Below are positions 23,010 to 63,999 of a DNA stretch of 64,000 bases, in pieces. The number at the start of each line of letters is the position of its first letter. Position 1 is the first letter of the stretch. Both the position numbers and the translations under genes were made by a program. A model generated the notes under the pieces. It saw nothing but the letters and a program-made list of their open reading frames with translations, ran no database searches and was not told where the DNA came from. The DNA is taken from positions 259,268 through 323,267 of the IMG/VR virus record IMGVR_UViG_3300023174_000040; one strand, 5' to 3'.

Positions 23010-23444
23010 ATGAAAATGAAAAATAAATTTACAGATTACAAAGATGTAGTTAAAATTCTTAAAAAGCATTGCCCTTTAGCGTATGAAATCAGCGTTAGAA
23101 GAGTGGCAATGGGAAGATGTCTTGATGGAGATTGTGTAAAATATAAAAAGAAATTCTTTATAAGAATTAACAGAGATCTGCCAGAAGATTCTGCTATAGA
23201 CACTCTTTTACATGAATGGGCACATGCCCGTGCTTGGAATCATCTACTAGATAACTTGGATAGTCAAGACAAATTCGATGATTTTTCCCACGATGCATCA
23301 TGGGGAGTTGCATATAGCGAAGTCTATAGACTATATCAGAGATACTTTCTATTAAGCACAGATGGAATGAGTAACGTAGATGAATCAACCATGTGCAGTA
23401 AAAAAAGATATTGTAGCAGAGGAACAGATCAAGAAATAATATGA
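23010..23444 (+). CDS. HExxH zinc metallopeptidase-like (SprT-like) protein
   Basis: IDTLLHEWAHARAW...HDASWG. Confidence 0.7.
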   Translation: MKMKNKFTDYKDVVKILKKHCPLAYEISVRRVAMGRCLDGDCVKYKKKFFIRINRDLPEDSAIDTLLHEWAHARAWNHLLDNLDSQDKFDDFSHDASWGVAYSEVYRLYQRYFLLSTDGMSNVDESTMCSKKRYCSRGTDQEII

Positions 23445-24244
23445 ATTATTTTGTCTCGGTAGAAGATTCTTACTACCATAATTGGCAACTCGAATTATTG
23501 ATAGAAAGCTTCAAGGTATTGGGTCTAGAGGACAATCTATATATATCGGTGGCTCAGGCAGACAAAGAGTATCTTAAAAATAATAAAAATCTTTCAACAC
23601 ATGCCAATAAATATATTCATAAAAATATAGGCAGAGAAACAGGTATACTCAAATTAAATAAATGGGGTTCTCTTTACACTCTTATGGAGAACAACATACT
23701 AAGTTTACCCGTGACCGTACTAGATCCCGATACAGTCATACAAAAAGATATAAAAATACAAGATAAACAATTTATATTTTCTATTGATCCTGACTTTGTT
23801 TATAATAAAAGATATGCCAAATTAATTAGACTATCAAAAAATGAAATGGATAAATGGCTTAATCTGGGTGAAGTGTTTGTTTTTAATGAATTATCATTAA
23901 ATTTCTTTAAGGATATGGCAATATTATGTCAAATGGTGGGATTGGATCCAAACAAATATCAAGTTGATAAAGCGGCATTATTTGCAACTTTGTGCAAACA
24001 TAAAGTCAGTAAAATATTAGCCAGTAATGATATCGAAGGAAATCTAATAGAGAGTCAATTAAAAGATATAATAAGCTATAGGCATGGAGTTAATCCCATG
24101 TTTAATAAAAAACTATATAAAAGTAATGATATGAATTTCTCCATGGCATCCGATAATCCAATAAATCTTTTATCTAAAATGGACCACACCCCTTCTTTAG
24201 AGTATGTGTCCAAGATTGCAAAGAGAATTATAAACCGAATATAA
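23441..24244 (+). CDS. GT-A-fold glycosyltransferase-like protein (resembles HPAT/SERGT1 O-glycosyltransferases)
   Basis: FVSVEDSYYHNWQLELLIESF; NKW; VLDPD (DxD). Confidence 0.5.
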   Translation: MNYFVSVEDSYYHNWQLELLIESFKVLGLEDNLYISVAQADKEYLKNNKNLSTHANKYIHKNIGRETGILKLNKWGSLYTLMENNILSLPVTVLDPDTVIQKDIKIQDKQFIFSIDPDFVYNKRYAKLIRLSKNEMDKWLNLGEVFVFNELSLNFFKDMAILCQMVGLDPNKYQVDKAALFATLCKHKVSKILASNDIEGNLIESQLKDIISYRHGVNPMFNKKLYKSNDMNFSMASDNPINLLSKMDHTPSLEYVSKIAKRIINRI

Positions 24245-47000: not shown

Positions 47001-47296
47001 GCGGGACCCCGTCCCTAGAGTCGGTTTTGGCCTATGGCTTCGGAACATGGGCGGGATACAATGGAAAGGCAAATTTCCGCATAATATACGGTTATGACAA
47101 CAATATGGATATGACTGCGTGGGTGGAATTCTTTGAGTCTCTGGGCGATGGCACCGCCGGCGGAAGTAAGAATTACATCAATGCGTTGACAAGCGGATGC
47201 ACGGTACAAGATGCAATCAACTATATGATAAACAACCACGTCTCCTGGGAGATGGGCGACGTGGGATGGTATATAGAAACGGGGAGCGACTGCTAA
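44012..47296 (+). CDS. Large fibre/adhesin with LamG domain, Gly-rich beta-helix and LRR-like C-terminus
   Basis: GRGDFTIE...HVAMTR...GYLREFRVVKG; LQTLNLSG/LRNLSYIDISNN. Confidence 0.75.
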   Translation: MANLEQYTPIYIKSSGNDSTGDGSSGNPYLTAQKAFEVAYAGTGLKVLDFTEGNFGGVNLNGFSDWPSRIAVRGVDSQSSVLGGIIGASKKISIISDKTVEIGEISGGSTVLTDCKAGKVNSASISLIDSDVVGLNSSRTSCSGKAKGLGGGNILGPSRTEKVSLLLHMGGSRENIATFTDYSIDTKNIKVKGNTRIITGVYTCNGSSWPHCGYFPPPAQQSCFFDGNGSYLETKEEKDFGFGRGDFTIESKIYIPYDSWGTTGTIFNLGGGIKLRTYGAESLVIDGETYNWYPGDNIPIDQEVHVAMTRKGGEFNIFVNGERVFQLTGVSVDLGRSNILRIGAGEEDGMEAFYLYGYLREFRVVKGRAVYSGEFLPPTEALSVIVEDHPSLDSRTLYFNNIANDNSWTNLNNWWSDEACTVHSSSLPGEHDKVVVRGAAFDGINVTVRKLTMFADGNIPSHTSFKNSTINARNGIFAITTGAGYVESGGSGFASTCALNGNVFFFESDATQGTMSAQVDGNLTVGGCDVGVNVYVSGSVIVKGDCTNFGHVGKNLIVELGGFGNGNGAVHPTIEGNAIFIGGRGLVATADGSPSPGNWGAINGNAEFYLGAVNAGNVYGKAYFHDSSNGGTLHNGATFVSTVGGAAMNWLRDENGEGSGAFGLINGTTKIYGAGYVGGSGSFFDDVHLYDGVILTNTFKPPLIEGNIYCHDNSTLGSVACPSDVYFYDNSHGNMSYSPGLNSDWLLATYGTPDWEGWSEGQYRPINGYDPPNLRSDFYVGSCALYGNSTLGDFLVLNDLTLNGESGMTQYNVTATTGGDQGLRHGVLESGTRVEGRIICNTTGDCYPDILSLTVNAGHTGYKTFIVGGCSYVNVKINGNISTIEGSSVDLSYIINQFELTGFLNITIQPCSMDGNPTWERITSFITYQALNFITGVGSLRGMNRIGTLDLINIQNPELDVLSLKSLQTLNLSGPNIASVNVSGLRNLSYIDISNNGGTPSLESVLAYGFGTWAGYNGKANFRIIYGYDNNMDMTAWVEFFESLGDGTAGGSKNYINALTSGCTVQDAINYMINNHVSWEMGDVGWYIETGSDC

Positions 47297-47985
47297 TGAA
47301 CTACTTCAAGACACCAAGCAACAAATACCTCGCCTTTATCCCTAGGTCGGGAAGCACAAGTTTCGCAAGGGCCATAGTAACCCAATTCTATCCGGAACTC
47401 CTTCCGAGGCTCGAGAAAAAACATCCTAACAAAACGGATCCAAAGCCCCAGTTCATCTGCCCGTCCAGCAGCTTTCCTGACGGGGACGCCTATGCCCTCA
47501 TAAGGGACCCGGTGGAAAGGTTCAGGAGCGGATTTTCAAGGGCAAATTTCGGAAGGACCGTGGACGAGGTGATAGAAGACCTTTTCAAGGGCGAATGCAT
47601 AATGAACGTTCACATCGAACCGCAGAGCAACAGGATAAAACACCAAAAGGACATAAAGTGCTTCAAGTTCCCAGAGGGAATAAACGCACTTTCGGAGGCA
47701 CTTGGGATGACGCCACCCGAGCAGGAAAATGAAAGCGAGGACGGCGAGAAGCCGAATCTCACGCAGAAGCAAATAGACAATTTAAGAAAATACTATTTTA
47801 AGGACGTGGAACTGTATGAGAATGCGAGTGTAGAATACACACCAACCACAACAGAACCAACCACAACAGAACCAACCACAACAGAACCAACCACAACAGA
47901 ACCAACCACAACAGAACCAACCACAACAGAACCAACAAACATTAATGATGAAGTGGATATGCCCAGATTATTTAAAGGAAAATAA
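47296..47985 (+). CDS. Sulfotransferase (family-2-like) with a (PTTTE)6 tail
   Basis: FIPRSGSTS 5'-PSB loop; IRDPVERFRSG 3'-PB; HIEPQ; TAATG overlap. Confidence 0.75.
   Translation: MNYFKTPSNKYLAFIPRSGSTSFARAIVTQFYPELLPRLEKKHPNKTDPKPQFICPSSSFPDGDAYALIRDPVERFRSGFSRANFGRTVDEVIEDLFKGECIMNVHIEPQSNRIKHQKDIKCFKFPEGINALSEALGMTPPEQENESEDGEKPNLTQKQIDNLRKYYFKDVELYENASVEYTPTTTEPTTTEPTTTEPTTTEPTTTEPTTTEPTNINDEVDMPRLFKGK
47841..47930 (+). repeat. Perfect 15-nt tandem repeat x6 (ACCAACCACAACAGA)
   Basis: Read directly. Confidence 0.95.
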
Positions 47986-49433: not shown

Positions 49434-50654
49434 ATGGCGAACATTGTTTTTAGTGATCCTTTTAATTTAAGAGCGAGATACGGTGCACCCAATTCTTTAT
49501 CCTGGGATCAGAGAAATTTAGATTACATAGCAAAAATTGAATCAGCGAGAAACTACAAAGTATCATCGGCATCTCAAACCGCACCAGGAACACAAAACAG
49601 ATCAAACTACACCAGTTGCGTAGACAATTATCATTGTTTCTGGAATGGGGTAGGATGGACAGTAATACCAGCATGCTCATCCAGTTGGATAGGAGGTATG
49701 ACCTTAATGCAAGTCACTCCCACTCCCACAGTGACAAAAACAAGTACTCCAACTTTAACTCCAACTAAAACGCCTACTCCTACTTTAACAAATACTCCTA
49801 CACCAACCAATACTAAAACATTAACTCCAACTAAAACTTCCACCCCCACTTTAACACCAACCAGAACTTCCACTCCCACCCCAACATCAACCCCAACATT
49901 AACTCCTACCAAAACAAGCACACCCACATTAACCAGCACTCCTACTCTAACAATAGCTCCTCCAGCAATAGTGGAAGCATCCTTGCCATTCTATGATGAT
50001 TTCAACAGACAAAATAACCCTTACATATCAGGTTATTGGCGTGAACGCATAGGAAATTTTATAATATCTAATAATTCTGCGGTGGGCGTGGATCCATCCA
50101 TCTCTTTAATGACACTTAATGGAATAAGAGAAAAAGATTCTTTTATTAGTTGTTATGTGGATTTAATAAATTCATCGATACCTACGGGAGCAGCAAGATC
50201 ATATATGCCTGTGGGTTCAGGAGGAGGAATTATAACTAGATATACAGCCGATCCATATGGAGTATTTGGTGATGGGTATATGTATTTGGGAATGATTGCA
50301 AAAAATGGAACTACATATTACGGTCAAATATGGTCCAACAATGGATCATGGTCATTACTAAGTTCATCACCAATAAATTCTACAAACACCGTAGGCGTAC
50401 TAGCTTTTAAAACATTGGGAAGTTCTTTAACACTGTATTTTAATAATACACAAATAGTTTCTGTCATTAATACAAGCATCCCAGGATATGGTGGTATAGG
50501 CATAAGGGCTTTGGGCGCCAATTGTATTTTCGACAACATGCAGGTTAGTTCAATATCAAATTATAATAGATCTAGAGATATTGATCAAAATTATATTAAT
50601 TGGGGATTATTAAGAATGATAAATCAAAATAATATTTCAGGATGGGGTGAATAA
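49434..50654 (+). CDS. Virion-like protein with a long (TP)n linker and lectin-like beta-sandwich
   Basis: ~80-aa Thr/Pro tract; FYDDFNR...N..G..W start of a concanavalin-like domain. Confidence 0.7.
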   Translation: MANIVFSDPFNLRARYGAPNSLSWDQRNLDYIAKIESARNYKVSSASQTAPGTQNRSNYTSCVDNYHCFWNGVGWTVIPACSSSWIGGMTLMQVTPTPTVTKTSTPTLTPTKTPTPTLTNTPTPTNTKTLTPTKTSTPTLTPTRTSTPTPTSTPTLTPTKTSTPTLTSTPTLTIAPPAIVEASLPFYDDFNRQNNPYISGYWRERIGNFIISNNSAVGVDPSISLMTLNGIREKDSFISCYVDLINSSIPTGAARSYMPVGSGGGIITRYTADPYGVFGDGYMYLGMIAKNGTTYYGQIWSNNGSWSLLSSSPINSTNTVGVLAFKTLGSSLTLYFNNTQIVSVINTSIPGYGGIGIRALGANCIFDNMQVSSISNYNRSRDIDQNYINWGLLRMINQNNISGWGE

Positions 50655-50655: not shown

Positions 50656-53202
50656 ATGAAAGAAAAAATATATAATTTAGTATTAAAAGACATAAAAGAT
50701 AAGACTTCATTCTTAGATGACATGAAAAAAGACTCGGGAGATGAATATATTCCGGAAAAAAAATGTTTAGCTTTAAATAACACAAATTTACAAAGAAGAG
50801 TTTTATCTTTTAGATTAACAGAAGAAGAAGCAGAAAAACTTGAAAAAGATCCAAGAGTGGAAGCAATTCAACAGAAAATCCCTTATAAAATAAAACCCCT
50901 GATTCTAGATCCTGGTCGTGATTATGGTGAAGAAAAAAATATAAGAATGCAAGCTGCGCCGTCAGATGCAGTAGCAGCAATCTACAGAATACCAACAGGA
51001 GAAGATGTAGATGTTGTTGTAGTAGATGGACACATAGACCCAAATAATCCAGAGTTTGCATTAAGAAAAGATGGAACAGGCGGAAGCAGAGTAAACCAAA
51101 TAGATTGGTTCAATGTTTTATATCCATATGGGGTTCCGGATAATTTCCGGCCATATGAAAAATACAATTATGAACCATATGTAAATCCAGACAATTATCT
51201 AGAAACAGAAGATAACAATCACGGTGCTCATGTAGGAGGAACAATAGCTGGAAATACTCAGGGTTGGGCACCAAAAGCAAATATATATAACATATCACCA
51301 TATCACGCAGAGATGGTCGACGGCCGAGATTGGAGGTCAGATGGTCCGCATGATCTATATTTACATGCTATTAAAGTCTGGCACGAAAATAAACCAGTAA
51401 ATATTAAAAAAGGAACAAAAAATCCCACTATAACAAATCATAGCTACGGGGTTGGCATTGGTGGAATTGATGTCAGAAATATTATAGACGTAACATACAG
51501 AGGCGTAAAATATACTTCTACAAGAAATTATTCTGGGGCCAAGGCAACAACAACTGTTAATTCTGGTAAAGTTATTTCTGGGACCATTACAAATCAGGGA
51601 ACAAATTACACAAATGAACCAACAGTGTCATTTTATGGGGGAGGACAAGCCAGAGCAAAAGCACCAGTCGGAAATGGAACAATATATGAAATAACAATAA
51701 CCGATCCTGGGGAGGGGTATCCTTGCGCTCGCTGCGAGCGATATCCAACTTCATGGGTTGAGTGGGTTCCGATAACATTCAGCCCTGCTCCTGCGGGAGG
51801 TCAAACGGCAATAGGTAGAGGATCGATTAGGATGGTTGAGGGGTCGGGAATTTATTATATAGAGATGCAAAACAGGGGAAGTGGTTATACTACTCCTCCT
51901 ACTATAACTTTCCCTCCTCCTCCAAATGGAGGAAGAACAGCAAAGGCAACATGTAAAATAAAGTCTGGGGTTTTGAATGAACCCATTGTCAATAACGGAG
52001 GATCGGGGTATTTAAATTTTCCAGAAGTTATATTAAGCGGAGGAAATCCTTCCACCCCAGCTCAAATAAGCATACTAGCCTTTGAGGATAATCATAAAGA
52101 TGGTGATTTGAGCACAATTAAAAACGGTGATGTTTTTATAGAATATTACGGTGAACCAACTTATAAAATAGTTCAAGATAATATAAATGGAACAATATAT
52201 GAAAGATATGTTGTTGAAAGTATAAAATACACCTGGTCGTGCGGAGAAGGCTACACCTCCGATCCAATTGTTAGCTTTTATGGCGGAAATTCTGTGGTGG
52301 ATGGAGTTAAAACCGGGAATAAGGTAGAGGCAAGAGCGATTCTGGGTACCGGGGCTAATCAAGGAAAAATTATAGGATTAAATATAACATATCAAGGTTC
52401 AGGCTATACCTCACCACCAAATGTGGTATTTACAAATGGAGGAGGGTTTTCAAAAGAACAATTAAATAATTTTGGATTAATATCTTATGCTTACTCGGAT
52501 CCATTGATGCAAGGTAAAAGATTCATAGACATAGGAATAAGAACTATTACTATGGAAGCAGATTTAACAGACCTGATGAATTCTGGAGTAGTTGTTGTAG
52601 GGGCGGCGGGCAATAATTCCACCAAAATAGATGTGCCAGGAGGACCGGATTATGACAATAAACTAAATGTGGTAGTCCCAGGATTTGGTTGGTATCTACC
52701 AGAAGGAGTGGACCCAATATATTTTACTGAATTCATGTATGAGACGTATTATCACAGAGGATCAAGTCCAACGGCTTGCCCAAATGTAATTAGCGTAGGA
52801 TCTTTAAGTAGATTGGTAGCAGAAACAAAAAATACTTGGAGCAATACAGGACCCAGAGTAGATGTTTATTCACCTGGGGATATGATAGCTTCAACGACAC
52901 ACAGTATTTTTCCCGGATATCCAAGTATTCCTGATATTAGAAGTATCGGAAAACCAATTACATACTATGTGTCAAAATTAAGCGGAACAAGCATGGCTAG
53001 TCCACAAGTATGTGGCATGATAGCATCCCACGCCACAACCAACAGAAATATAAATCAATTAACTGCGATTGAATTTATCAGAAATACCTCCAGAAATACT
53101 GTTAATGATACAGGAGGTAGCTATTCTGATCTCACCTCTTTATTGGGAGGGGCCAACAGATCTGCCTATTTTCCAAATATAAGTTATACCTTGTATAGTT
53201 AA
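50656..53202 (+). CDS. Subtilisin-like (S8) serine protease with inserted structural repeats
   Basis: VVVVDG, HGAHVGGTIAG, AAGN, GTSMASPQV. Confidence 0.9.
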   Translation: MKEKIYNLVLKDIKDKTSFLDDMKKDSGDEYIPEKKCLALNNTNLQRRVLSFRLTEEEAEKLEKDPRVEAIQQKIPYKIKPLILDPGRDYGEEKNIRMQAAPSDAVAAIYRIPTGEDVDVVVVDGHIDPNNPEFALRKDGTGGSRVNQIDWFNVLYPYGVPDNFRPYEKYNYEPYVNPDNYLETEDNNHGAHVGGTIAGNTQGWAPKANIYNISPYHAEMVDGRDWRSDGPHDLYLHAIKVWHENKPVNIKKGTKNPTITNHSYGVGIGGIDVRNIIDVTYRGVKYTSTRNYSGAKATTTVNSGKVISGTITNQGTNYTNEPTVSFYGGGQARAKAPVGNGTIYEITITDPGEGYPCARCERYPTSWVEWVPITFSPAPAGGQTAIGRGSIRMVEGSGIYYIEMQNRGSGYTTPPTITFPPPPNGGRTAKATCKIKSGVLNEPIVNNGGSGYLNFPEVILSGGNPSTPAQISILAFEDNHKDGDLSTIKNGDVFIEYYGEPTYKIVQDNINGTIYERYVVESIKYTWSCGEGYTSDPIVSFYGGNSVVDGVKTGNKVEARAILGTGANQGKIIGLNITYQGSGYTSPPNVVFTNGGGFSKEQLNNFGLISYAYSDPLMQGKRFIDIGIRTITMEADLTDLMNSGVVVVGAAGNNSTKIDVPGGPDYDNKLNVVVPGFGWYLPEGVDPIYFTEFMYETYYHRGSSPTACPNVISVGSLSRLVAETKNTWSNTGPRVDVYSPGDMIASTTHSIFPGYPSIPDIRSIGKPITYYVSKLSGTSMASPQVCGMIASHATTNRNINQLTAIEFIRNTSRNTVNDTGGSYSDLTSLLGGANRSAYFPNISYTLYS

Positions 53203-55709
53203 CCGTCTATAGAGTAGTCTGGATTTTCACTATCCATTTCTGTTTCATAATCCTTTATTTCTAGACCGTATTTTTCAACATCCTGCTTATCTGGTTCTGG
53301 GAGGGGTTTGGCATTATTATCCTCTGAGGTTTCCTCCTCAGATGGAGCGGGCTCTTCTTGAGGAGTTTCAGTTTCAGTTTCTCCACTATCTTCGGAAGGA
53401 GCCTCTAAATTTTGTGCGGGGCCGCCAGGGACTGCGGATAACTCAGTTTCATCTCCGTTATTTTCTTGAGGAATGCCCACCCCCAATAATTGAGGATTTT
53501 GAGATAAAACTTGAATCTTTAATTCTTCTAGTTTTTGAATCTTTAATCTACTAAGCATCTCAGAAGTTTCTTGATCATTGTATTGAAGCCACTGAGTGTA
53601 AATATCATAATCGCTCATTAAATTTGCTGTTTTAAGTTGTGTGGCAACATTTAATCTAGAATTAACAACTTCAGCTCTACTTAATTCTCTCCAATCGCTT
53701 GGAGGAGTCATTTTTATTTTAAGGTCTTTATAGAGTTCTTGCGGAAATCCACGAAGATATAGATGCCTATCTGCTATATCATAGAGGCAATCTTCAAAAG
53801 AAGATTGTAATCTCTCAATCATTCTTGCAAATTTAACATCCTGAGCAGATAAAGTCATTCTTGTAGCATTGACATCTTCTCCACTAAAATAACTTTTTGG
53901 GAAATTCAAACTAACAAAAAGTTTATTTCTAAAATAAACTGCGTCGTCAACTTCACCTAAATTTTGAGCACCAGGAAGAGTTTCTATTCTTGTGTTGCTG
54001 CCCGGTCTTAATGGCAACCAATAGTCTTCATCCACTGCGGGTGGTTGCCACCTTTCATCAACTTGATTAACGCTAGATCCGCTGCCCATGGCCACTTTTC
54101 TTTTTCTAAACTGGTCTTTCATTCTTTCAATTAGACTATCAACTTTAAATGGCGGTAATTGACCAACATCTACATAAAACACTCTTCTCTCAGGTGCTCT
54201 AGCAAGTCTATATGTGACCATGGCATCTTCCATCAATCTTAATTGATGAGCAGGGCTTCTGGCTGGTTCTATCAAGCTAACTCCATAAGGATAAAATAAT
54301 TTTCTATCTTCTCCTATTCTGAAGTGCACAATTTGATTTAAGTTGAATCTTATGGCAGTGGATTTTTGAAGATCGAAATTATCTTGACCCAAAGGTATAG
54401 GGTTCATCAAAGCACTATAGTCCGGTCCTTCTTTACTCTGTTGGAATTCTATTAATTTACCCCGGATAGTTTCTATACGATACATAGTTTCTGCCGGCAA
54501 GGATATAGCCTTGTACAATCCATCCTCAGGATTGTCCGGATCTATTATGAGTTCTAAGAAGTGATCTCCATTCACACAAAGATTCTTAAACCAGCTCCAC
54601 CCATTTTTATTTATATTCAACATCTGTCGATGGAAGAATAAAAATTCTAATTCTTTTCTGATCTCTTCATTTGATATCTCTAGTTTACATATATTGCCTT
54701 CTGTATCTTTTTGGCAATTGTGCAAAACCACACTATCTGTGCAAAAGCACTTGTGTTTTTCTACACTTATATCATATACATTTTCTTCTGTTTCATTTTT
54801 GAAAACACCTATAACTCTGCGGCGGTCTTGTTTCCTGCTTAATCTATGAACTTCAGTGGTAGTGAACCCAATCCTCTTTAGATTAGCAATTACACCCGGA
54901 ACTGTCATTCCAATCAACTCACATGTTTTATTTAAAGCCAATCCTTTACTTAACATATGAAGTATTTTTGATGTCTTTTTATTTTCTTCTTCTACTTTTC
55001 CTGTTCGCCATTCATCAACGAACATTCTCTCGTGAGTCCAACCTTTGTTGTATGTAAATACTCTGGGGAACTGATTTTTATTTAATTTAGTTTGATAATT
55101 ATTTACAGGCAATCTATAGAATGCCATGAGTGTGTCTCCTTCTTTCAAGGAGCCTGTTTCCACCCAATCCCCATTTCGATTTAGAACTTTGTGATCACTA
55201 GTAGCTGTGAATTTGCTTCCATCATCCAATATTATGGTTATTGTTTTCTCTTTCTTAACCAATCTTGGATTATATGCCCAGCCAAGGGTATAATCTTTAG
55301 AAATTTCATCGTAGCAATAAACTAGAAATCTTTCATCTGGACTATTTTTTACCAAGTCTTCAATTTTTTTAAGTCCAAAAGGAGTGCTTATTTCTGTGTT
55401 TCCGCTAACACATGCTTCATCGGATATTACCGTAACAACAGTTTCTATCTCGGGTAGATTTCTAAGCCTCTCATATTCCTTGTATCTAGCAGTTCTATTC
55501 GTTAGGGTGGTTATATCGATCATATCGTTTGTTTGACGATATGCCATCAGTCCACCTGGATTATTAACTACATCATCACCGGCAAATGTCTGCAGGGCAT
55601 CCGCTTGAGCGATGCCTGCCCCAGTAAGATTTTTAGTATCTTGTACCTTAGAACTTGGATCCTTTTGGAAACCAAATGTAAACAATTTAAAATAGTCTGA
55701 CCATGCCAT
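53199..55709 (-). CDS. gp20: Portal protein (T4 gp20-like) containing an intein
   Basis: YGVSLIEPA, LRLMEDAMVTYRLARAPERRVFYVDVG, EDYWLP, IETLPGAQNLG. Confidence 0.95.
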   Translation of the reverse strand: MAWSDYFKLFTFGFQKDPSSKVQDTKNLTGAGIAQADALQTFAGDDVVNNPGGLMAYRQTNDMIDITTLTNRTARYKEYERLRNLPEIETVVTVISDEACVSGNTEISTPFGLKKIEDLVKNSPDERFLVYCYDEISKDYTLGWAYNPRLVKKEKTITIILDDGSKFTATSDHKVLNRNGDWVETGSLKEGDTLMAFYRLPVNNYQTKLNKNQFPRVFTYNKGWTHERMFVDEWRTGKVEEENKKTSKILHMLSKGLALNKTCELIGMTVPGVIANLKRIGFTTTEVHRLSRKQDRRRVIGVFKNETEENVYDISVEKHKCFCTDSVVLHNCQKDTEGNICKLEISNEEIRKELEFLFFHRQMLNINKNGWSWFKNLCVNGDHFLELIIDPDNPEDGLYKAISLPAETMYRIETIRGKLIEFQQSKEGPDYSALMNPIPLGQDNFDLQKSTAIRFNLNQIVHFRIGEDRKLFYPYGVSLIEPARSPAHQLRLMEDAMVTYRLARAPERRVFYVDVGQLPPFKVDSLIERMKDQFRKRKVAMGSGSSVNQVDERWQPPAVDEDYWLPLRPGSNTRIETLPGAQNLGEVDDAVYFRNKLFVSLNFPKSYFSGEDVNATRMTLSAQDVKFARMIERLQSSFEDCLYDIADRHLYLRGFPQELYKDLKIKMTPPSDWRELSRAEVVNSRLNVATQLKTANLMSDYDIYTQWLQYNDQETSEMLSRLKIQKLEELKIQVLSQNPQLLGVGIPQENNGDETELSAVPGGPAQNLEAPSEDSGETETETPQEEPAPSEEETSEDNNAKPLPEPDKQDVEKYGLEIKDYETEMDSENPDYSIDG
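54717..55412 (-). mobile_element. Intein (232 aa, residues 100-331) in the portal
   Basis: DEA|CVSGNT block A; TSDHKV block B; VYDISV block F; VLHN|C block G. Confidence 0.92.
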
Positions 55710-56736: not shown

Positions 56737-56986
56737 GGCCAGTTCTGATGATCTTTTTATTTCTCAAAACTTTTTGATCTCTATCTTCATGCTCTTTAAG
56801 AGCATCTTTTATTTTTTTGTTCCAAGTTGAAATCTTATTTTTAGAAACTCCTAAAAGATCAGATAATCCTTGACTATTATTGATAACCAAAAGAAAATTA
56901 TTCCAAAAGTTTTCATCAACATTTAATCCGGTCAATATAACATTGTGGTCTTTTTTATCTTTAATGTAATCTTTAAACTTTTTCAT
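56717..56986 (-). CDS. Hypothetical protein, candidate internal protein
   Basis: Likely start MKKFKDYI at 56986. Confidence 0.55.
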   Translation of the reverse strand: MKKFKDYIKDKKDHNVILTGLNVDENFWNNFLLVINNSQGLSDLLGVSKNKISTWNKKIKDALKEHEDRDQKVLRNKKIIRTGLKNSSK

Positions 56987-57002
56987 ATGAATATATATTA
57001 AA

Positions 57003-58313
57003 TTATAAATTATTTTTATATACAAAACAATCATCATAAGTTATAAAGTTATTTAAACATTCATGGACAGCCTTTTTTACACCAGGATGATAGTTTTGTT
57101 CACCAGTGTAATAATCGTGACCCGCTAATATTCCATTTTTCTTTACTTTTGGAAGCCAAGCCTTTATATCATTTTTAACATCCTCGTATTCATGAGACGC
57201 ATCTATAAAAACAAAATCTAAAGAATGATCTTGAAATTGATTTGCGGCTTCAATGGAGGGTTTTCTAATTGGAATATAGTATTTTTCTATTGGCCTCATA
57301 TTCTGAATAAAGGTGTCATACAAAGAGTCTATTTCTTTCATTTCTTTATGCTCTGAGCTTCCCATCCAAGTGTCAACACAATAAAATTCTATATTTTTAT
57401 TTGAATTAGCAATTTCTACGGCCATAAAAGCGGAAGATTTTCCTTTCCAAGACCCTACTTCAACAAATCGACTACCAGAGGATGAACTAAGAACCATGTT
57501 TCTATACAGTTTGGTATATGTAAACCAATTTTCACCGAACTGTTGGCCCTCATAAATATGAGGAATTTTTTTAATCATATCATTAAGATTGATATATTGA
57601 CCCTTATTCTTCCACCAATTAATTATCCAATTATAAGAATCCCAGTGATATTCTCCTTGTCCATTTATTTCTGTAGGGTCTTTACCAAGATATGTTGATT
57701 TTACATTTTTTACGTCTTCTACAAATATTGGAATATTATAGACTGTGCCCAACCCAGAAAAAACTATGTTTTCTACAATGGGGATTAAATTATTATTTAT
57801 GTTCAGATTAAATTCATTTTCATTGACATAATAGCTGTCTATTATTTTTTTAACGTAATCTCTTTTTATTAAATACGCTGCTGCGCCCCAATCATCCACC
57901 AGTCTTTGTCTAAGTTCTATATCAATGTTATTTGGACGTATCCAAGATAATTGAACGCATTCCCAATTATTTGGAAGACTATCGATAAACTCTTCCCATG
58001 TAAAGCTCCAATAAGACACAGGTTCTAATGAAAGATCATCTTCACAAAAAAATGCATAATCTTCTTTTGTAGAGTCATACCATTTTTTTAGAGCTTTGAT
58101 GTGAGATGTTATGGGGCCTTTACTATTTTCATGTAATTTATCAACAAGTTGTCCATTCAACTTAAAATTATATTCATGATACCTTTTAAATATATGAGGA
58201 ATTAAATTTGTTATTCCATAACTAGAAAATTGTTTTTTAAGATTTTCTCTTCTTTCTAAGGATTCTTCAATACCAATAAAATTAACAGGACCTATTCCTT
58301 TTAGTTTATTAAT
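57003..58313 (-). CDS. GT25-like glycosyltransferase fused to a class I SAM methyltransferase; frame opens at the A11 tract without an ATG
   Basis: KLKGIGPVNFIGIEESLERR upstream of the track's TTG; SHIKA, EDD, WGAAAYLI; VEVGSWKG, DFVFIDASH, AGHDY. Confidence 0.75.
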   Translation of the reverse strand: MNKLKGIGPVNFIGIEESLERRENLKKQFSSYGITNLIPHIFKRYHEYNFKLNGQLVDKLHENSKGPITSHIKALKKWYDSTKEDYAFFCEDDLSLEPVSYWSFTWEEFIDSLPNNWECVQLSWIRPNNIDIELRQRLVDDWGAAAYLIKRDYVKKIIDSYYVNENEFNLNINNNLIPIVENIVFSGLGTVYNIPIFVEDVKNVKSTYLGKDPTEINGQGEYHWDSYNWIINWWKNKGQYINLNDMIKKIPHIYEGQQFGENWFTYTKLYRNMVLSSSSGSRFVEVGSWKGKSSAFMAVEIANSNKNIEFYCVDTWMGSSEHKEMKEIDSLYDTFIQNMRPIEKYYIPIRKPSIEAANQFQDHSLDFVFIDASHEYEDVKNDIKAWLPKVKKNGILAGHDYYTGEQNYHPGVKKAVHECLNNFITYDDCFVYKNNL

Positions 58314-59562
58314 TTTTTTTTTTAAGCATTATATCTTTAGCTAAATTAATTTCATTCTTAGGAGTAGAAATTAATTTTTTTAATATTGAATTATCAATTA
58401 AATCTTTATGAACCCACCAATCTTCAAAACTACAATCTTCATGAGGAGATACATCATTAAAAACAAGAGTATATCCCATACTTCTCAAATATCTTCTAGA
58501 TTTATCTCTGAAGCTTCTTGTTATGTCAACATAGTGATCGTGTTCATATGTTATTACTTTGAACTTATATTTATCGAATGGAATTAATAGTAATGCTTCA
58601 AATGTGTTTTTACAAGGTTCAATATCTATTTGTAAATAATCAATAACATTATTGGAAAAATTATTTCTCAAAAGTTCTTCATAATTTATCTTTAGAGCAT
58701 TTTCGCATAAAACTTTATTGGTTCTTTCTCTATCATGCATATCAACTAACTCACGTTTCATCTCTATGCCAACGCCAGTCCATCCAAATTCTCTTTCCAG
58801 TAAAGCTGTGTTACTATTATGAAGAGAATGGGCAGAACCTATCTCTAAGTAGGTTCCATTTTTCTTTCCATTCAAAGCAGCAAGAACAAAAAGATCTTGA
58901 TAAACCTGAGAGAAATTTCTTTCAATATTGTCAGATCCTTCAAACTTAAAACTCAAATCAAAATCAGAATTTTTGGAATAAGTAGCAGAACTCTGCTCAA
59001 CAGAGCCAGAGCCCAATGTGATCAGGTTGGTTTCTACCAACTTTAAATAAGTTTCATTAAGTTGATCTCCATATTCATCTTTTAATTTTCTAAGAAGTTT
59101 TCTTGCTTCTTTTGGCTTTCCATACCACCAAGAACAAACCGCCTTTTGAAAAACAAGCATGTATTTTGATGAATACTCAAAAGTAGTTATTAAATTAGAA
59201 GGGAGACAATCTGTAGTCTCCAGAGCTATCGAAGCATATAAGTACCCATCCATCCAATTTTGTTTTCTTTCAAAAAATTGACTTAAGAAAAAATATGCCT
59301 CTGGGCTTTTTGGCTTCAAATTAATAGCACTTTTTAATAAATTTTCACAAGTATAATCTCTATTTGATAAATTAGAGTAACACAAATAAAGTCTTAATAA
59401 GCATTCATACGCTAAATTTTCATCTTTAGTAAGTTCTGCGCACCTTAAATAATAACTACAGGCCGGTGCAAGGTGTTTTTGGTTTTCATACCACAATGCT
59501 AGATTAAAATTAGTTTTATCGTTATCAGAGTCTTTTATGTAATCTAATAATTCTTTATTCAT
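58309..59562 (-). CDS. TPR-domain plus FkbM-like methyltransferase protein
   Basis: Helical TPR-like N-half; QVYQDLFV, YLEIGS, IDYLQID, ITYEHD, FEDWW. Confidence 0.75.
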   Translation of the reverse strand: MNKELLDYIKDSDNDKTNFNLALWYENQKHLAPACSYYLRCAELTKDENLAYECLLRLYLCYSNLSNRDYTCENLLKSAINLKPKSPEAYFFLSQFFERKQNWMDGYLYASIALETTDCLPSNLITTFEYSSKYMLVFQKAVCSWWYGKPKEARKLLRKLKDEYGDQLNETYLKLVETNLITLGSGSVEQSSATYSKNSDFDLSFKFEGSDNIERNFSQVYQDLFVLAALNGKKNGTYLEIGSAHSLHNSNTALLEREFGWTGVGIEMKRELVDMHDRERTNKVLCENALKINYEELLRNNFSNNVIDYLQIDIEPCKNTFEALLLIPFDKYKFKVITYEHDHYVDITRSFRDKSRRYLRSMGYTLVFNDVSPHEDCSFEDWWVHKDLIDNSILKKLISTPKNEINLAKDIMLKKKN

Positions 59563-60535
59563 AAGTTTTTAAAAATTTTCCTAATATATTTTTTGGCATT
59601 CCCAAAATATAGGCCGCATTATCTTGAAATCCAAAAGTTATTAATAATTTATCTTTATAGTCGGCCATGCCACAACAGAATTCAATTTTTGCCCCCATAA
59701 ATGAAAAAGAATCTGAGATCTCAATAATTTCGAAATCTTTATTCCACACAACAAATCTATGTGTGTATATTGCATTTTTTCTTCCAGCTTCTGAGCTATA
59801 TAAATTTACTTCATGAACTATAGCTAAATAATTATCGTTTAAAAATAAAAGCTGCGAGCCGCCTCTAAGATCCATAGTTTCTAATTTTTTGTATTCATTT
59901 AATACGATTGTTTTGCATGTTTTATCTTCGGGATTTACTTCAACAACTTCTGTTGGGTTTGTCCATTTGACATAAGTGTACTTTTTATTTAAAACCGGCA
60001 TCCAATTTTTTTCACAATAACTATTGTCCATTCCGGGCGCAGGAATACGTAATCTGCTTTTTTCTATTACCTTATCTTTTTTATAAACTATCTCAGATAA
60101 CTCCATTCTTCCAACGCCATTCACCGTAGTATCTCTTCTGACTCCGCTCAAAAATAACTTATCATCCCACTCAACTAATCTTCCATCTTCTAGCCCAACG
60201 AATTCCCACATAGGATTTTCATCCAAAAAAGTGGTGTCTATAATTTTACTATCTTTTATATTAAAGTTTTCATCTAATTTGCATAAAATATTGTTTGTCA
60301 CCAACCTTTGATCATTTTCTTGATGAAGATAACAAAGTGGTCCCCAACTGTGCTCAAAAACTCCACTCTCACTATGATATAACACATAATTAAGATTCCT
60401 GAGGTTGACAAGAATCTCTCCAATTTTATTAATATATATAGTAGGATTGGTTAATGATGGACCTATCATAGAATCAATAGGAACAATCAAAGGAGCTATA
60501 AAGCCCCCATTCTCTACACAGTTTTTAACTAACAT
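59555..60535 (-). CDS. Five-bladed beta-propeller glycosidase/phosphorylase-like protein
   Basis: NPTI, GLEDGRL, EKNWMP, LRGGS, IEFCCG. Confidence 0.7.
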   Translation of the reverse strand: MLVKNCVENGGFIAPLIVPIDSMIGPSLTNPTIYINKIGEILVNLRNLNYVLYHSESGVFEHSWGPLCYLHQENDQRLVTNNILCKLDENFNIKDSKIIDTTFLDENPMWEFVGLEDGRLVEWDDKLFLSGVRRDTTVNGVGRMELSEIVYKKDKVIEKSRLRIPAPGMDNSYCEKNWMPVLNKKYTYVKWTNPTEVVEVNPEDKTCKTIVLNEYKKLETMDLRGGSQLLFLNDNYLAIVHEVNLYSSEAGRKNAIYTHRFVVWNKDFEIIEISDSFSFMGAKIEFCCGMADYKDKLLITFGFQDNAAYILGMPKNILGKFLKTYE

Positions 60536-60537
60536 AA

Positions 60538-61002
60538 TTATTGACCAAGCTCAGGTGGTTCAGTAGCAGGTGGTTCAGTAGCAGGTGGTTCAGTAGCAGG
60601 TGGTTCAGTAGCAGGTGGTTCAGTAGCAGGTGGTTCAGTAGCAGGTGGTTCAGTAGCAGGTGGTTCAGTAGCAGGTGGTTCTACAGTTACAGTTCCATCT
60701 TCATTATAAGAAAAACTTCCAACTAAAGACAAACCTTCAGATATATCTTCTGGTTTTATAGACCATAATAATTGCCCTAATTTACCATGAAGTTCAAAAA
60801 CTTCTTTTGCATCTTTGCCTAAAGCTGTAGTTATTTCTATTGGTGGTAATCCTCGTGGATTTCGCCAAAATATCCTGGCTCCTTCGTTAAAAGCATTTAC
60901 CATCATAACATATGTTTGGCGAGTTTGATTTTTAATTCTATTCGCAACCATCTCTGAAAGTGGCGTAGATGGTTGCTGGCTGTTGTTATCTAATATTCCC
61001 AT
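60538..61002 (-). CDS. Hypothetical protein with a (PPATE)8 tail
   Basis: 154-aa ORF coupled to the sulfotransferase. Confidence 0.7.
   Translation of the reverse strand: MGILDNNSQQPSTPLSEMVANRIKNQTRQTYVMMVNAFNEGARIFWRNPRGLPPIEITTALGKDAKEVFELHGKLGQLLWSIKPEDISEGLSLVGSFSYNEDGTVTVEPPATEPPATEPPATEPPATEPPATEPPATEPPATEPPATEPPELGQ
60553..60681 (-). repeat. Perfect 15-nt tandem repeat x8
   Basis: AGGTGGTTCAGTAGC units on the + strand. Confidence 0.95.
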
Positions 61003-61003
61003 A

Positions 61004-61804
61004 TTAATTTCTCCATATTTCTAAATTAGAGTATTTGTTTAATAAAAAATTTCCTAAAACTTTGTCAGCATCACTGGGCACCGGATTCAAAACGGGTCTT
61101 ATGTTATGCAAACCCGGTATTCTATGAACACCGGAATCATCCTCTTTTGTCACCTGTACTATGTTAGTAAAATTGTGAATATAATATGGCAACTCTAAAT
61201 AATCATAAATTTTCTTCATAGTTTGACCTGGGTAGTTGGTCAACTCCTCAAATTCCAAAAATAAAATATCATTTTTATAACCTCTTGATATAGCATCTTT
61301 AATTCTATTGTAAGCTAATCCTACAGGTTGAGCCGCACTGCTCCATATTTCACATCGTCCCTCTACAGTTTGAGCTTTAAAATATTCATTTTGTTCAAAA
61401 TTCCACTGAGAAAATCCTGTGCTTTTTCTCCATAATTTTTCAAAACTAGACAGTATATCGCTTATATTTCTTACCGGGGCTATTATTTTAGGTTTTTCAT
61501 CAGTAATGAATTGCACCATCTCTATAAGACTAAGCCAACCTCTTCCTTTATCTATTATATAATTTTTATCACTTATATGATAATTATCTAAAATTGATTT
61601 TAAAACTCTTTTCAACTGATTGTGATTAACACCTTCTGCTTGGTGCTCTATCAATTTATCCCATTGGTTTCTGACACCAAAAAGAACATCGTGACAGCCG
61701 CTGGTGGCTTTGCTAACAAAAAGATCGTTATTTTGTGCCAATATATTACATAAAAGAGTGCTACCACTTCTTGGTAGACCACTTATAAAACTAAATTTTT
61801 TCAT
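61004..61804 (-). CDS. Sulfotransferase (family-3-like)
   Basis: ISGLPRSGSTLL, DKGR, VRNISDILSS, FEEL. Confidence 0.85.
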   Translation of the reverse strand: MKKFSFISGLPRSGSTLLCNILAQNNDLFVSKATSGCHDVLFGVRNQWDKLIEHQAEGVNHNQLKRVLKSILDNYHISDKNYIIDKGRGWLSLIEMVQFITDEKPKIIAPVRNISDILSSFEKLWRKSTGFSQWNFEQNEYFKAQTVEGRCEIWSSAAQPVGLAYNRIKDAISRGYKNDILFLEFEELTNYPGQTMKKIYDYLELPYYIHNFTNIVQVTKEDDSGVHRIPGLHNIRPVLNPVPSDADKVLGNFLLNKYSNLEIWRN

Positions 61805-62022
61805 AATATTCTGAGATGTGTTTAAGCTATTATAGTATTATTGATCATTTTTTAAAGATTCTAAATAATTACCAACCACCTCATTTACTTCTTCTTGTGT
61901 CGGATAGTGATCAAATCTGAAGAATTGACTAGAATTTTCATCAATAACCACTCTTGTCCTATATTTATTGGCTTCATCAAGAAAGACTTCAGTAATTTTA
62001 TAATCCATATTTCACCTCATAT

Positions 62023-63999
62023 TTATATTTGTATTATAGTAAGATCATCAACATACCCAGTAAATGTACTTCCTCCCCAGCACTCTGCTAATATTTCAAC
62101 AACACCGGCCTCAGTAGGGGTAAAACTTAAAGAAACTTGCTCCCAAGTATCCGCCACAGTCATATAACCCGTAACATCATTGGTTACTCCTGCTATTTGC
62201 CCACCCTTAACCCTTAATCTCATCACTAATCCAAAGGCACTTCTTCTCATCCAAGCCTTGACAGTAACCTGACTATTAGCACTCACAGCAACTGTTGCTA
62301 GACTAAGATCTAAAGGAAAGTTAATTGATCTTACGTTAACGTGCGTAGGAGCCATCGCCCAGGCTATTCCATTATTGCTGTATCTCACTGATGTTGTGCT
62401 ATAAATTAAACCAAAATCACACCATATATAGTGAAGATTGGCAGTTTGGTCATGATTATGAGAGAATACCTTAGAGTTACTGCCGTATCCTGGACTTGCA
62501 ACCGCAACTTCAGTAGTATCATTCAGAGCGCAATTAATAAAGTATGTCGGCCCTCCATTGTTAGTCCTATGAGATGCTGTGGTGTTTGTTGAAAACGTTA
62601 CATTTTTGAAAACATTGCTATGTCCAAGAGTATTATTATCCACTCCATATTGCCAACTATCAGATATTGTTCCATTGTTTGCAGTTAAATTATGGCCAGA
62701 AATAAAACCGATCCCATTGATATTATTTTTAATTGTGAAAGTATCTAGTGTATTAGAAAGAGCATTGTAGTATGTGATACCTGCTCCATTGTTGCTACAT
62801 ATAATCATATTTCTAAGTGTACTTTGTCCTAATTGATTGAATGCAAAAACTCCACCAGCAGAAGAATAGCAACAATAAATTGTATCATATGTAAAACGTA
62901 TATGTTCTCTAGCATACAAACCATATTGATCACAATTATTACAATGACAGTTAGTAGCTGTGGAATACATATTGCCCGGCAAGAATAGTCCATAATAAAA
63001 TCTAACAAAGCAAACTCTATCTACTGTAAGGTTTCCACCACCAGCAAGATAATAAGAATAATTTCCATATCCATATCCATTTCTTCCATCAAACCAACTT
63101 TCTCCTGTTCTGGTGCTCATATCTGTTCTATTCCAACCAAAAGAGTAAATTATTGGATTGCCAACTCCAGCGGACTGTGGTGATCGGCCTCCTATTTGAA
63201 AATTCAATAAAGATGTTGTTGTAGCTGTGGCGGTCGCCGCCAATGGTGCCTTTATTGTTTCTCTTTTATATGTTGTTACTGTTTCACTAGTTCCGTAATA
63301 TCCTGGTATCTGTATGCTTGATGACCCAATCGTGACAGGTCCAAATTGTCCACCAGTATCAAGCATGACTCTTGTTCCGTTAATACTTTGGATGCCGCAC
63401 CAAGTTTCTCCGCTTGTATTCTTGCCAATCAATGAACAAAGATTAAGACTATCGGCACTAGAACTTGCCTTGCAAGCAATAACATTAGACAACACGAATG
63501 TTTGAGCACCGTTGTCAGTATTCACATAGAATCCTATACTCTGAATACTTGATCCTAAGTTAGTAGCAAGATCTATGGTTATTGGAGTCCATCTATTAAG
63601 TACGGTCAGGTTTTCAATGTTGAAGGTGTTTACCGCTGTTGCCCCAGCCGCATCGGAACATAATTTCAGGGACAAAGATGAGGATGCTCCGATTGTGCCT
63701 GATATTTGTTTTATCCAGAAACTGATCTGTTGGTATCCGCTAAGATTCAAAGTTCCGGTAGCTTTGTATGCGGCCAATCCTGTGGTGAAGTTTGCTCCAA
63801 CCGCTATGGAATCTGAGCAGTCACCCTCTTTAATGCCACCCAAAACATCAGTAGTGGCCAAAGATGTTATTACGTCGGCAGTCTGTGCTGTCCACGCTGT
63901 TCGTCCATTTCCTCTGTTTCCGTGACTGGCAATATTAACTATTGGGGATGATGCCAATATTACTCTTTGATTGGAAACTTTTCTTAAAAATCCGGCAGC
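62023..63999 (-). CDS. Partial large virion/fibre protein with parallel beta-helix repeats (start outside window)
   Basis: Frame is open to the window edge; (C/N)NN..YG repeats; C-terminal carbohydrate-binding-like domain. Confidence 0.7.
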   Translation of the reverse strand, partial: AAGFLRKVSNQRVILASSPIVNIASHGNRGNGRTAWTAQTADVITSLATTDVLGGIKEGDCSDSIAVGANFTTGLAAYKATGTLNLSGYQQISFWIKQISGTIGASSSLSLKLCSDAAGATAVNTFNIENLTVLNRWTPITIDLATNLGSSIQSIGFYVNTDNGAQTFVLSNVIACKASSSADSLNLCSLIGKNTSGETWCGIQSINGTRVMLDTGGQFGPVTIGSSSIQIPGYYGTSETVTTYKRETIKAPLAATATATTTSLLNFQIGGRSPQSAGVGNPIIYSFGWNRTDMSTRTGESWFDGRNGYGYGNYSYYLAGGGNLTVDRVCFVRFYYGLFLPGNMYSTATNCHCNNCDQYGLYAREHIRFTYDTIYCCYSSAGGVFAFNQLGQSTLRNMIICSNNGAGITYYNALSNTLDTFTIKNNINGIGFISGHNLTANNGTISDSWQYGVDNNTLGHSNVFKNVTFSTNTTASHRTNNGGPTYFINCALNDTTEVAVASPGYGSNSKVFSHNHDQTANLHYIWCDFGLIYSTTSVRYSNNGIAWAMAPTHVNVRSINFPLDLSLATVAVSANSQVTVKAWMRRSAFGLVMRLRVKGGQIAGVTNDVTGYMTVADTWEQVSLSFTPTEAGVVEILAECWGGSTFTGYVDDLTIIQI

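Follow-up and report, generated by a model that had tools for sequence, protein, structure and literature searches.

Background

Glycosylation of virion proteins by phage enzymes is known from mycobacteriophages, in which the C-termini of capsid and tail-tube proteins are glycosylated by glycosyltransferases (GTs) of the phage (Freeman et al. 2023, as cited in PMC12619734). Here we describe a group of enzyme genes behind a tail-fibre-like gene, at positions 57,003 to 61,804 of a 64,000-nucleotide stretch of DNA (hereafter the window) that forms the last 64 kb of a 323,267-bp IMG/VR virus record (IMGVR_UViG_3300023174_000040; CheckV completeness 64%), and compare it with about 130 related loci. 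The locus is the enzyme-bearing end of a tail-fibre, or 'host recognition', module and joins two cassettes, each of which is linked to fibre genes in many aquatic phages. We tentatively propose, with a probability of about 45%, that its soluble enzymes decorate the fibres of the phage itself with a methylated and possibly sulfated glycan. As far as the mycobacteriophage system is described in the citing paper, it resembles this locus in having soluble phage GTs beside structural genes of the same phage; it differs in that its acceptors are the tails of capsid and tail-tube proteins and were shown by experiment, whereas the acceptors considered here are fibres, the enzymes belong to other families and include methyl- and sulfotransferases, and the system is known from genes alone.

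A second point of comparison is the host recognition cluster, or 'LPS genes' (for lipopolysaccharide, LPS), of aquatic T4-like phages, likewise a variable region in which tail fibres are mixed with GTs and sugar enzymes (PMC7029224, PMC12801897). In those papers, however, the assigned role lies in the host O-chain or cell wall, and propeller and sulfotransferase fibre cassettes are not described. The phage studied here is also far larger than the phages with such clusters (>323 kb) and of lake origin, and no psbA was found in its ~64%-complete record, so that a cyanobacterial host is not supported from that portion.

Mimivirus, whose enzymes L230, R699 and R655 belong to collagen and fibril glycosylation (PMC9546862), is another virus that combines collagen-like proteins with its own GTs, and the GT domain of this locus matches R655 and human COLGALT1, at a template-modelling (TM) score of only ~0.45. 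The Mimivirus, COLGALT and LH3 enzymes act on hydroxylysine, whereas the phage repeats contain next to no Lys or Pro, abound in Thr, Ser and Gln, and are not accompanied by a linked lysyl hydroxylase. Sulfotransferase operons predicted to modify tail-collar and collagen-like proteins (Iyer et al. 2010, PMC2938197) have in common with this locus the genomic linkage of a sulfotransferase to fibre or collagen-like proteins as proposed substrates; they centre, however, on 2-oxoglutarate (2OG)-Fe(II) hydroxylases that make the hydroxyl for sulfation, of which this operon has none, and there, too, the activity is a prediction. The GH130 and GT108 families share a five-bladed propeller fold with one product of the locus, but that product does not match PF04041, and pairing with a methyltransferase carrying tetratricopeptide repeats (TPR) beside fibre genes is not found in those families. 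Two further systems, with other hosts, enzyme families and linkages, serve as leads only: A064R of Chlorovirus PBCV-1, a GT-GT-methyltransferase fusion that builds methylated capsid glycans, and BclA of Bacillus anthracis, whose Thr-rich collagen-like repeats bear O-glycans that include a methylated sugar.

The enzyme families, the co-location of GTs with fibre genes in aquatic myophages and phage virion glycosylation are already known. The literature searched contains no description of a collagen-like fibre/propeller/TPR-methyltransferase cassette, of a fibre/sulfotransferase/partner cassette, or of a four-domain enzyme split by a homopolymer.

Organization of the enzyme operon

According to the list of open reading frames (ORFs) and their translations, five ORFs on the minus strand run co-directionally behind a fibre-like gene. 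Cassette 1 consists of a sulfotransferase of the type that uses 3'-phosphoadenosine-5'-phosphosulfate (PAPS) and a small partner; cassette 2 consists of the propeller and the TPR-methyltransferase, extended here by a GT25-like GT and a second methyltransferase dependent on S-adenosylmethionine (SAM). The features are as follows, in the order of transcription.

62023..63999 (-), beta-helix fibre-like gene, 3' part, its 5' end lost at the contig end; Beta_helix 4e-5, slightly below cut-off
61004..61804 (-), PAPS-type sulfotransferase; PF13469 3.6e-14, PF00685 3.6e-12, phrog_27463 8e-57
60538..61002 (-), sulfotransferase partner, 154 aa; conserved domain of ~105 aa ending in N-E-D-G-T-V-T-V, then a (PATEP)x9 tail
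60552..60681 (-), perfect 15-bp tandem repeat coding for the PATEP tail; 8.7 copies, 100% matches (Tandem Repeats Finder)
59555..60535 (-), five-bladed propeller of the GH130/GT108 kind by its model, 326 aa; AF2 pLDDT 82, pTM 0.86
58309..59562 (-), TPR repeats and C-terminal FkbM-like methyltransferase domain, 417 aa; Pfam matches below cut-offs
58313..58323 (-), A11 homopolymer (T11 on the plus strand), where the TPR-FkbM and GT25 frames meet one base out of register
57003..58327 (-), GT25-like GT with Methyltransf_24; the listed ORF, 57003-58160, begins at TTG

An initial annotation of this DNA had reported a sulfotransferase, a glycosidase-like propeller, a TPR/FkbM methyltransferase and a GT25/methyltransferase behind a fibre gene; their location was borne out, and the genes run in a common direction. 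As to what the enzymes are, the sulfotransferase and Methyltransf_24 score above cut-off and the propeller is recognised by its fold, whereas the TPR and FkbM matches stay below the Pfam cut-offs. Their description as one operon has to be corrected in one point: the apparent gap before the last ORF proved to be frame-shifted coding sequence (see below). None of the operon enzymes has a transmembrane segment, and all are soluble. By themselves, searches with the five protein sequences among solved structures yielded no usable match.

The fibre gene can be completed from a 97%-identical relative (L006), in which the full homologue has 1055 aa and is 91% identical; it stands there between a gene of 353 aa, itself preceded by a (GLQGTQ)n collagen-like fibre gene, and the sulfotransferase. 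The latter reaches 54 bits with PF13469 (cut-off 27) and 46.7 bits with PF00685 (cut-off 22), and residues P11, R12, G14, S15 and T16 of its 5'-phosphosulfate-binding loop near the N-terminus are invariant in 13 homologues. Its best solved relatives are the tyrosylprotein sulfotransferases (TPSTs) TPST1/2, with a profile match of 1e-4 that covers residues 4-55 only. Assignment to the TPST/RaxST type was considered and rejected, the match being limited to those residues and the Tyr of the partner not being conserved: the residue preceding N-E-D-G varies among homologues between Y, M, I and L. In the 323-kb record (~64% of the genome) no adenosine 5'-phosphosulfate (APS) kinase was found, and the predicted sulfate transfer would therefore need PAPS from the host.

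The partner has no Pfam or PHROG family except a low-complexity match to Extensin_1, and no recognisable fold match (Atlas pLDDT 0.5). Its family comprises 47 clusters, every one of them with a variable P/E/T/S/A tail of 5-45 aa, and in close strains the PATEP unit is present in ~1, 6, 8 or 9 copies, with assemblies breaking at the tract. A complex prediction for the sulfotransferase and its partner scored 0.00 and weighs neither way.

Scanning of positions 55500-64000 for promoters and terminators yielded 51 sites against 41 +/- 7 in shuffled sequence, which is no excess. The T4 late-promoter word TATAAATA occurs 16 times in the window where 8.9 +/- 3.1 are expected, a number reached by 2 of 100 shuffles; with an enrichment that is marginal only, late expression is something we infer. 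One copy of TATAAATA, at 62020-62027 (-), overlaps the stop codon of the fibre gene, 216 nt upstream of the sulfotransferase start.

The propeller and its look-alikes

The propeller protein matches no Pfam model even at an E value of 10, PF04041 and PF12141 included, and is recognised through its predicted structure. The top Foldseek matches (5b0p, 6q4z, 9erg, 4udg and 9fj8; E 8e-9 to 1e-6, TM 0.5-0.66) belong to GH130, with its beta-mannoside phosphorylases, and to the GDP-mannose-dependent mannosyltransferases of Leishmania GT108, so that the modelled protein appears as a look-alike of a beta-mannoside phosphorylase or mannosyltransferase. In the neighbouring Atlas clusters only a minority of members carry PF04041 or BMT. 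The family is large, with 5487 homologous protein clusters that are mostly viral, and its alignment has 98 invariant columns, many of them charged (including D117, R119, R133, R134, D135, E175, K176, H241 and D305). Homologues in cultured phages are annotated 'MGP' and 'beta-mannosyltransferase'.

The GH130 fold and the placement among fibre genes could also mean that the propeller, and perhaps other products of the locus, have no biosynthetic role and serve as a virion-borne or released lectin or depolymerase for a beta-mannoside of the host surface, for which a weak resemblance in sequence to propeller lectins of Photorhabdus (E 0.04-0.14) might be cited. We regard this as very improbable. 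The propeller is a stand-alone protein of 326 aa that has no fibre-attachment domain, and in nearly all cases it is paired with, or fused to, SAM methyltransferases and GTs that need cytoplasmic cofactors; phosphorolysis requires phosphate, and synthesis requires a sugar-1-phosphate or GDP-sugar donor.

A four-domain enzyme interrupted by a homopolymer

For the TPR-methyltransferase, the scores are 1.7e-4 with TPR_14 and 1.2e-3 (16.6 bits) and 0.023 with PF05050, under its cut-off of 22.7 bits, and the homologue in DSL-LC02, a cultured Synechococcus phage, is annotated as FkbM. A second, clear FkbM gene is found elsewhere in the record. The last gene of the operon combines a Methyltransf_24 domain (PF13578 5.7e-22, 79 bits against a cut-off of 26.3, residues 233-350) with a GT25-like domain that matches phrog_2835 at 1.1e-33, a family whose cyanophage members are annotated GT25. 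The Pfam GT25 model, PF01755, does not match the latter domain; a 24-sequence profile of it matches the solved GT25 8xlz at 9e-4. Its model (pLDDT 88) has Mimivirus R655, human COLGALT1 and the bacterial GT25 8xlz as top fold matches, all at a TM score of ~0.45, and E40-D41-D42, the acidic metal-binding motif of the GT-A fold, is invariant.

Although the listed ORF begins at TTG, the frame stays open for ~55 codons 5' of it and codes there for the N-terminal part of the GT25 family, with no start codon in that part. The 148 nt that appear as a gap in front of the last ORF are coding, one base out of frame, and removal of a single A from the A11 run yields one ORF of 852 aa. This is the state observed in contigs from three other lake metagenomes, in which the run has a length of 10 and the 852-aa ORF is single. 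The 11-A form of the window is that of X1 and X3; it recurs in the source sample (depth 36) and in one other sample. A form one base longer, likewise out of frame, with a run of 13 and a changed flank, is found in L006 and in X6 (depth 32). In L043, a more distant relative of 487 kb, the TPR-FkbM-GT25-methyltransferase fusion is uninterrupted and has no homopolymer. From the in-frame fusions in L043 and in the three lake strains it follows that the TPR, FkbM, GT25 and Methyltransf_24 domains are one enzyme in relatives, and that the junction is a homopolymer of variable length. The variation in A11 length may represent a phase switch, a site of transcriptional slippage or a homopolymer sequencing error.

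The combination of a GT with methyltransferases may further bring to mind hypermodification of DNA, in which these enzymes would decorate the bases of the phage genome against restriction. Phage GTs often glycosylate DNA, as cited in PMC12619734, a match of the C-terminal domain to phrog_2675 bears the label 'DNA methyltransferase', and a Dam-type methylase is encoded next door at 55993-56736. The linkage, however, is to fibre genes and not to genes of replication or nucleotide metabolism, and no part in DNA modification is known for a sulfotransferase, a mannoside propeller or TPR repeats. Methyltransf_24 belongs to the O-methyltransferases of small molecules or sugars, and 'DNA methyltransferase' is a generic PHROG label; hypermodification of DNA seems scarcely credible as the function of this operon.

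Linkage of the two cassettes to fibre genes

At least 585 loci were detected in IMG/VR with the propeller as query, and 80 of them were kept for neighbourhood counts. A homologue of the TPR-methyltransferase is present in 74/80, mostly as the next gene downstream, and the GT25-methyltransferase in 27/80; the domains of the cassette are often joined in multidomain fusions of 650-1478 aa, in which their order is shuffled. The commonest other neighbour is a collagen-like tail-fibre gene (58/80 loci; Pfam Collagen 6.5e-51, PHROG tail fibre), which lies directly upstream on the same strand in 30/80. When the loci are dereplicated at 80% propeller identity, the fibre gene is directly upstream in 16 of 50 groups, and at most eight genes upstream in 31 of the 48 groups for which such sequence exists. 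The downstream flanks, by contrast, are made up of several unrelated sets that differ by lineage. P4H-type oxygenases were seen in 8/80 loci.

Among 17 long records, collagen-like repeats occur in all 12 that carry the propeller and in 2 of 5 complete genomes that lack it. Over 5623 triplets of these repeats, position X is T in 30% and S in 15% of cases and position Y is Q in 64% and T in 18%; the repeats are poor in Pro and Lys, and Lys is outside the ten commonest residues at X or Y. Two cultured Synechococcus phages also carry the core pair. In DSL-LC02, genes annotated beta-mannosyltransferase and FkbM sit between a collagen-like protein gene and tail-fibre genes, and in S-SCSM2R the homologous pair, ORF194/195, is found behind a baseplate gene.

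The sulfotransferase cassette shows a similar arrangement in a set of 24 loci (including L046), 21 of which have upstream sequence. In 19/24 the next gene downstream of the sulfotransferase codes for a homologue of the partner, and in 17/21 the gene directly before the sulfotransferase belongs to one family of long, receptor-binding fibre proteins, the remaining 4/21 having a fibre gene within two genes. Members of this fibre family have a conserved C-terminal tip domain of ~250 aa, together with Collagen (2e-50) or with the N-terminal part of the tropism determinant of a Bordetella phage (Mtd_N, 1.2e-15). In L046 a GT8-Methyltransf_24 fusion adjoins the sulfotransferase and partner, and in S-SRM01 the sulfotransferase homologue is grouped with genes for a nucleotide-sugar epimerase and a GT. 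In S-SKS1 the gene that follows the sulfotransferase, considered as a further partner, is not homologous to the partner.

It is possible that these genes act on the host and not on the virion. In T4-like phages of marine and fresh waters, GTs of the fibre regions have long been filed as host-altering 'LPS genes', and cyanophage and pelagiphage homologues are annotated and discussed accordingly (PMC12801897 for S-SCSM2R ORF194/195; PMC7029224). On this published view the enzymes would remodel precursors of the LPS O-chain, capsule or exopolysaccharide of the host, e.g. against superinfection or so as to alter grazing or adsorption, and the proximity to fibre genes would reflect a plastic island. 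GT25, GH130, FkbM and many sulfotransferases work on bacterial polysaccharides or LPS, and the neighbours of the sulfotransferase homologue in S-SRM01 and four further GT2 genes scattered elsewhere in the record are in keeping with such a role. However, modification of the host envelope leaves unexplained why two unrelated cassettes are kept directly downstream of fibre genes while other flanks change, and it accounts neither for the TPR fusion nor for the dedicated small partner. Pfam and transmembrane scans also found no flippase, polymerase, lipid-carrier or membrane-anchored enzyme in the operon, and we consider this explanation somewhat unlikely, yet a strong rival.

Fibre proteins as candidate substrates

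Action on the adjacent fibre proteins is the simplest account of two unrelated cassettes behind fibre genes, of the fusions, the TPR repeats and the solubility of the enzymes, and of their cytoplasmic cofactors. That the nearest solved relatives include enzymes acting on proteins (R655 and human COLGALT1 for the GT25-like domain, TPSTs for the sulfotransferase) and that the collagen-like shafts are rich in Thr and Ser are counted in its favour. Precedents are the glycosylation of mycobacteriophage virions and of Mimivirus collagen, both established, and the predicted sulfation of tail-collar and collagen-like proteins. The enzyme families and folds, the fusions and the synteny with fibre genes are established, and from them we infer the target, the chemistry (mannose or hexose, O-methyl, sulfate), the acceptor residues and the late timing. 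Late in infection and in the cytoplasm, the enzymes would draw on nucleotide sugars or sugar phosphates of the host, on SAM and on PAPS, and a short O-methylated, possibly sulfated hexose glycan would be placed on the fibre proteins of the phage before assembly. The TPR domain would be the protein-recognition part, and the acceptors may be Thr/Ser of the Pro-poor collagen-like (G-T/S-Q) shafts or of the fibre tips. The suggestion of the initial annotation that the enzymes act on virion proteins draws support from the position of both cassettes directly downstream of fibre genes, which is kept, with the same orientation, in diverged phages with differing other flanks, and the acceptors that it had named, the Thr/Pro tracts discussed below, are not upheld.

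Several points weigh against modification of the phage's fibres. The 2x2 table of propeller against collagen-like repeats is small (Fisher ~0.015), and the synteny counts are only partly corrected for shared ancestry. The fold matches are modest, with TM scores of 0.45-0.6, and the match between the sulfotransferase and TPSTs covers the PAPS loop only. The collagen-like repeats are without the Lys needed for collagen-type hydroxylysine glycosylation, and the GT25-methyltransferase part is out of frame in the window. The GH130 enzymes among the fold matches of the propeller act on free or lipid-linked glycans and not on proteins, as do characterised bacterial GT25 enzymes. Finally, the fibre regions of aquatic T4-like phages are hypervariable islands that gather accessory genes, and GTs in them are read as modifiers of the host O-chain (PMC7029224, PMC12801897).

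If the phage does dress its own fibres, the host range, adsorption and virion stability of very abundant aquatic viruses would be understood differently; phage virion glycosylation would extend from actinobacteriophage capsids to the fibres of Gram-negative or cyanobacterial myoviruses, and the known chemistries would gain sulfation and O-methylation. The presence of the core cassette in two cultured Synechococcus phages makes the fibre question directly testable. The Pro-poor, Thr/Ser/Gln-rich shafts also raise a structural question, namely that glycosylation might stabilise their triple helices; glycosylated Thr has this effect in some invertebrate collagens. A more far-reaching proposal would be that the fibres of a very large group of aquatic T4-like phages (the propeller family by itself has over 5000 protein clusters) are glycoproteins, with a methylated, sulfated O-glycan placed on Thr/Ser-rich collagen-like shafts or fibre tips by a dedicated cassette of propeller, TPR-methyltransferase, GT25-like GT, sulfotransferase and partner, and that in this lineage the poly-A run toggles the distal GT-methyltransferase half and so varies the glycoform, adsorption or escape from host or grazer between virions or strains, but this we hold to be unlikely.

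Threonine/proline tracts

Tracts rich in Thr and Pro were reported in the initial annotation for ORFs at 11460, 36107, 36633, 47296, 49434 and 60538, and all six were confirmed. Besides the sulfotransferase partner at 60538, they are the following.

11460-12209 (+), Thr/Pro-tract ORF
36107-36571 (-), Thr/Pro-tract ORF
36633-38966 (-), Thr/Pro-tract ORF
47296..47985 (+), possible second sulfotransferase; PAPS-loop-like motif I-P-R-S-G-S-T-S, Sulfotransfer_2 E 0.012; weak
49434..50654 (+), Thr/Pro-tract protein; ~75 residues of TPT-type linker; phrog_15511

A search with a degenerate DNA pattern gave 144 matches in 26 clusters in the record and none in a shuffle, and at least 17 ORFs of the record bear tracts, with runs of up to 30 Thr. 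The initial annotation took these tracts as mucin-like and proposed that they carry a methylated, sulfated glycan coat on many virion proteins. Apart from the abundance of the tracts, such a coat would fit the observation that all three sulfotransferase-like genes of the record are fused to a tract ORF or lie at most 0.5 kb from one (a post hoc count, with one tract admitted by a different criterion), that the sole prolyl-hydroxylase-type oxygenase of the record abuts a tract ORF, and that the GT at 23441 resembles hydroxyproline O-arabinosyltransferases (HPATs). However, when the co-occurrence of enzymes and tracts across genomes, a check that the annotation had itself suggested, was run on 17 long related records, tract counts ranged from 0 to 67 and were unrelated to the sulfotransferase, the propeller, the HPAT-like GT or the prolyl-hydroxylase-type oxygenase. 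A complete 160-kb genome with the sulfotransferase pair has zero tract matches, and a spatial test in the 323-kb record placed 2-3 of 11 glycan-enzyme units within 1-2 kb of a tract (p ~0.5). At 47296, moreover, the tract sits on the enzyme itself.

The tracts mostly join modules such as RCC1 propellers, an M43 peptidase and Fn3, DUF5122 and YHYH, and tract proteins also carry LamG-like modules. As they join modules and do not co-vary with the enzymes, they look like ordinary linkers or tails, and a glycan coat on them is quite improbable. The tract proteins also form a paralogous family with shuffled end modules (49434-50654, L127:1843-3333 and L129:1898-3058): the N-terminal 95 aa of the protein at 49434 resemble the C-terminus of a 984-aa tract ORF (see below), and the same protein and that at L129:1898-3058 have the C-terminal motif N-W-G-L-L-R...G-W-G-E in common.

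For the ORF at 47296, which had been called a sulfotransferase, the PAPS-loop motif is present and the family match is the weak one given above. It ends in a C-terminal (TTTEP)x6 tail, coded by a perfect 15-bp tandem repeat at 47841-47936, and has only five homologous clusters. Both perfect 15-bp repeats, PATEP x9 and TTTEP x6, go with sulfotransferase-like genes. A third sulfotransferase-like ORF is located outside the window, at genome positions 55548-56402 (-) (L129:757-1611). Its PAPS-loop motif reads T-P-R-S-G-S, its match to Sulfotransfer_3 (E 5e-3) falls short of the cut-off, and a divergent Thr/Pro-tract ORF is 287 bp away. The only prolyl-hydroxylase-type 2OG-Fe(II) oxygenase of the record, at genome positions 210347-210982 (+) (L127:1204-1839; PF13640 9.6e-9), is arranged tail-to-tail with the 984-aa ORF, which holds a very long TPT-type tract.

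Genomic setting and peripheral genes

The remaining genes of interest in the window are two further candidates for GTs and two neighbours of the operon.

2586..3428 (+), MptE-like/DUF115 protein; PF01973 4.2e-6, 27 bits, under the 34.6-bit cut-off; GT role putative
23441..24244 (+), GT-A-fold glycosyltransferase; Atlas structure matches at TM 0.75-0.78 to HPAT, GT7C and O-FucT/GlcNAc-transferase clusters
53199..55709 (-), T4-type portal (gp20) with intein, downstream of the enzyme operon; Portal_T4 3e-76, Intein_splicing 1e-11
55993-56736 (+), DNA adenine methyltransferase of the Dam type (D12 class), between portal gene and enzyme operon and on the other strand

Both GT candidates had been listed as GT-like before; that at 23441 is supported by its GT-A fold, and that at 2586 remains weak, its MptE-like/DUF115 match being below cut-off. 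The look-alikes of the 23441 model are protein or peptide O-glycosyltransferases, and its sequence has no Pfam, PHROG or NCBIfam match. Pfam matches to GT4, GT8 or HPAT are absent from the record.

The source of the DNA is a very large T4-like freshwater phage with a record of >323 kb, as follows from a T4-type portal with a large-phage relative and from the public runs that contain the stretch, all of which are lake or freshwater DNA metagenomes, with no RNA run among them. The closest relative of the portal, with 51% identity, comes from an uncultured phage of 595 kb; portals of Flavobacterium and cyanobacterial myoviruses are next, at ~30%. The arrangement of portal and intein is also found in the 595-kb relative (LR756511.1) and in L044. 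Positions 50647-53202 (+) code for an 851-aa protein with a subtilase (S8) domain and repeats that match PHROG families of baseplate wedge, tail fibre and virion structural proteins; a similar S8 gene lies close to the homologous propeller/TPR-methyltransferase pair in S-SCSM2R.

The G+C content is ~36%. An island of high G+C, 0.46-0.50 against ~0.35 elsewhere, extends over 42000-48000 and spans the large ORFs 40867-43716 and 44012-47296, the second of which has a LamG-like domain and matches PHROG 'virion structural protein' families. A tandem array with a period of 9 bp, of ~14 copies and 86% matches, is present at 17004-17233 within the ORF 16997-17413 (-).

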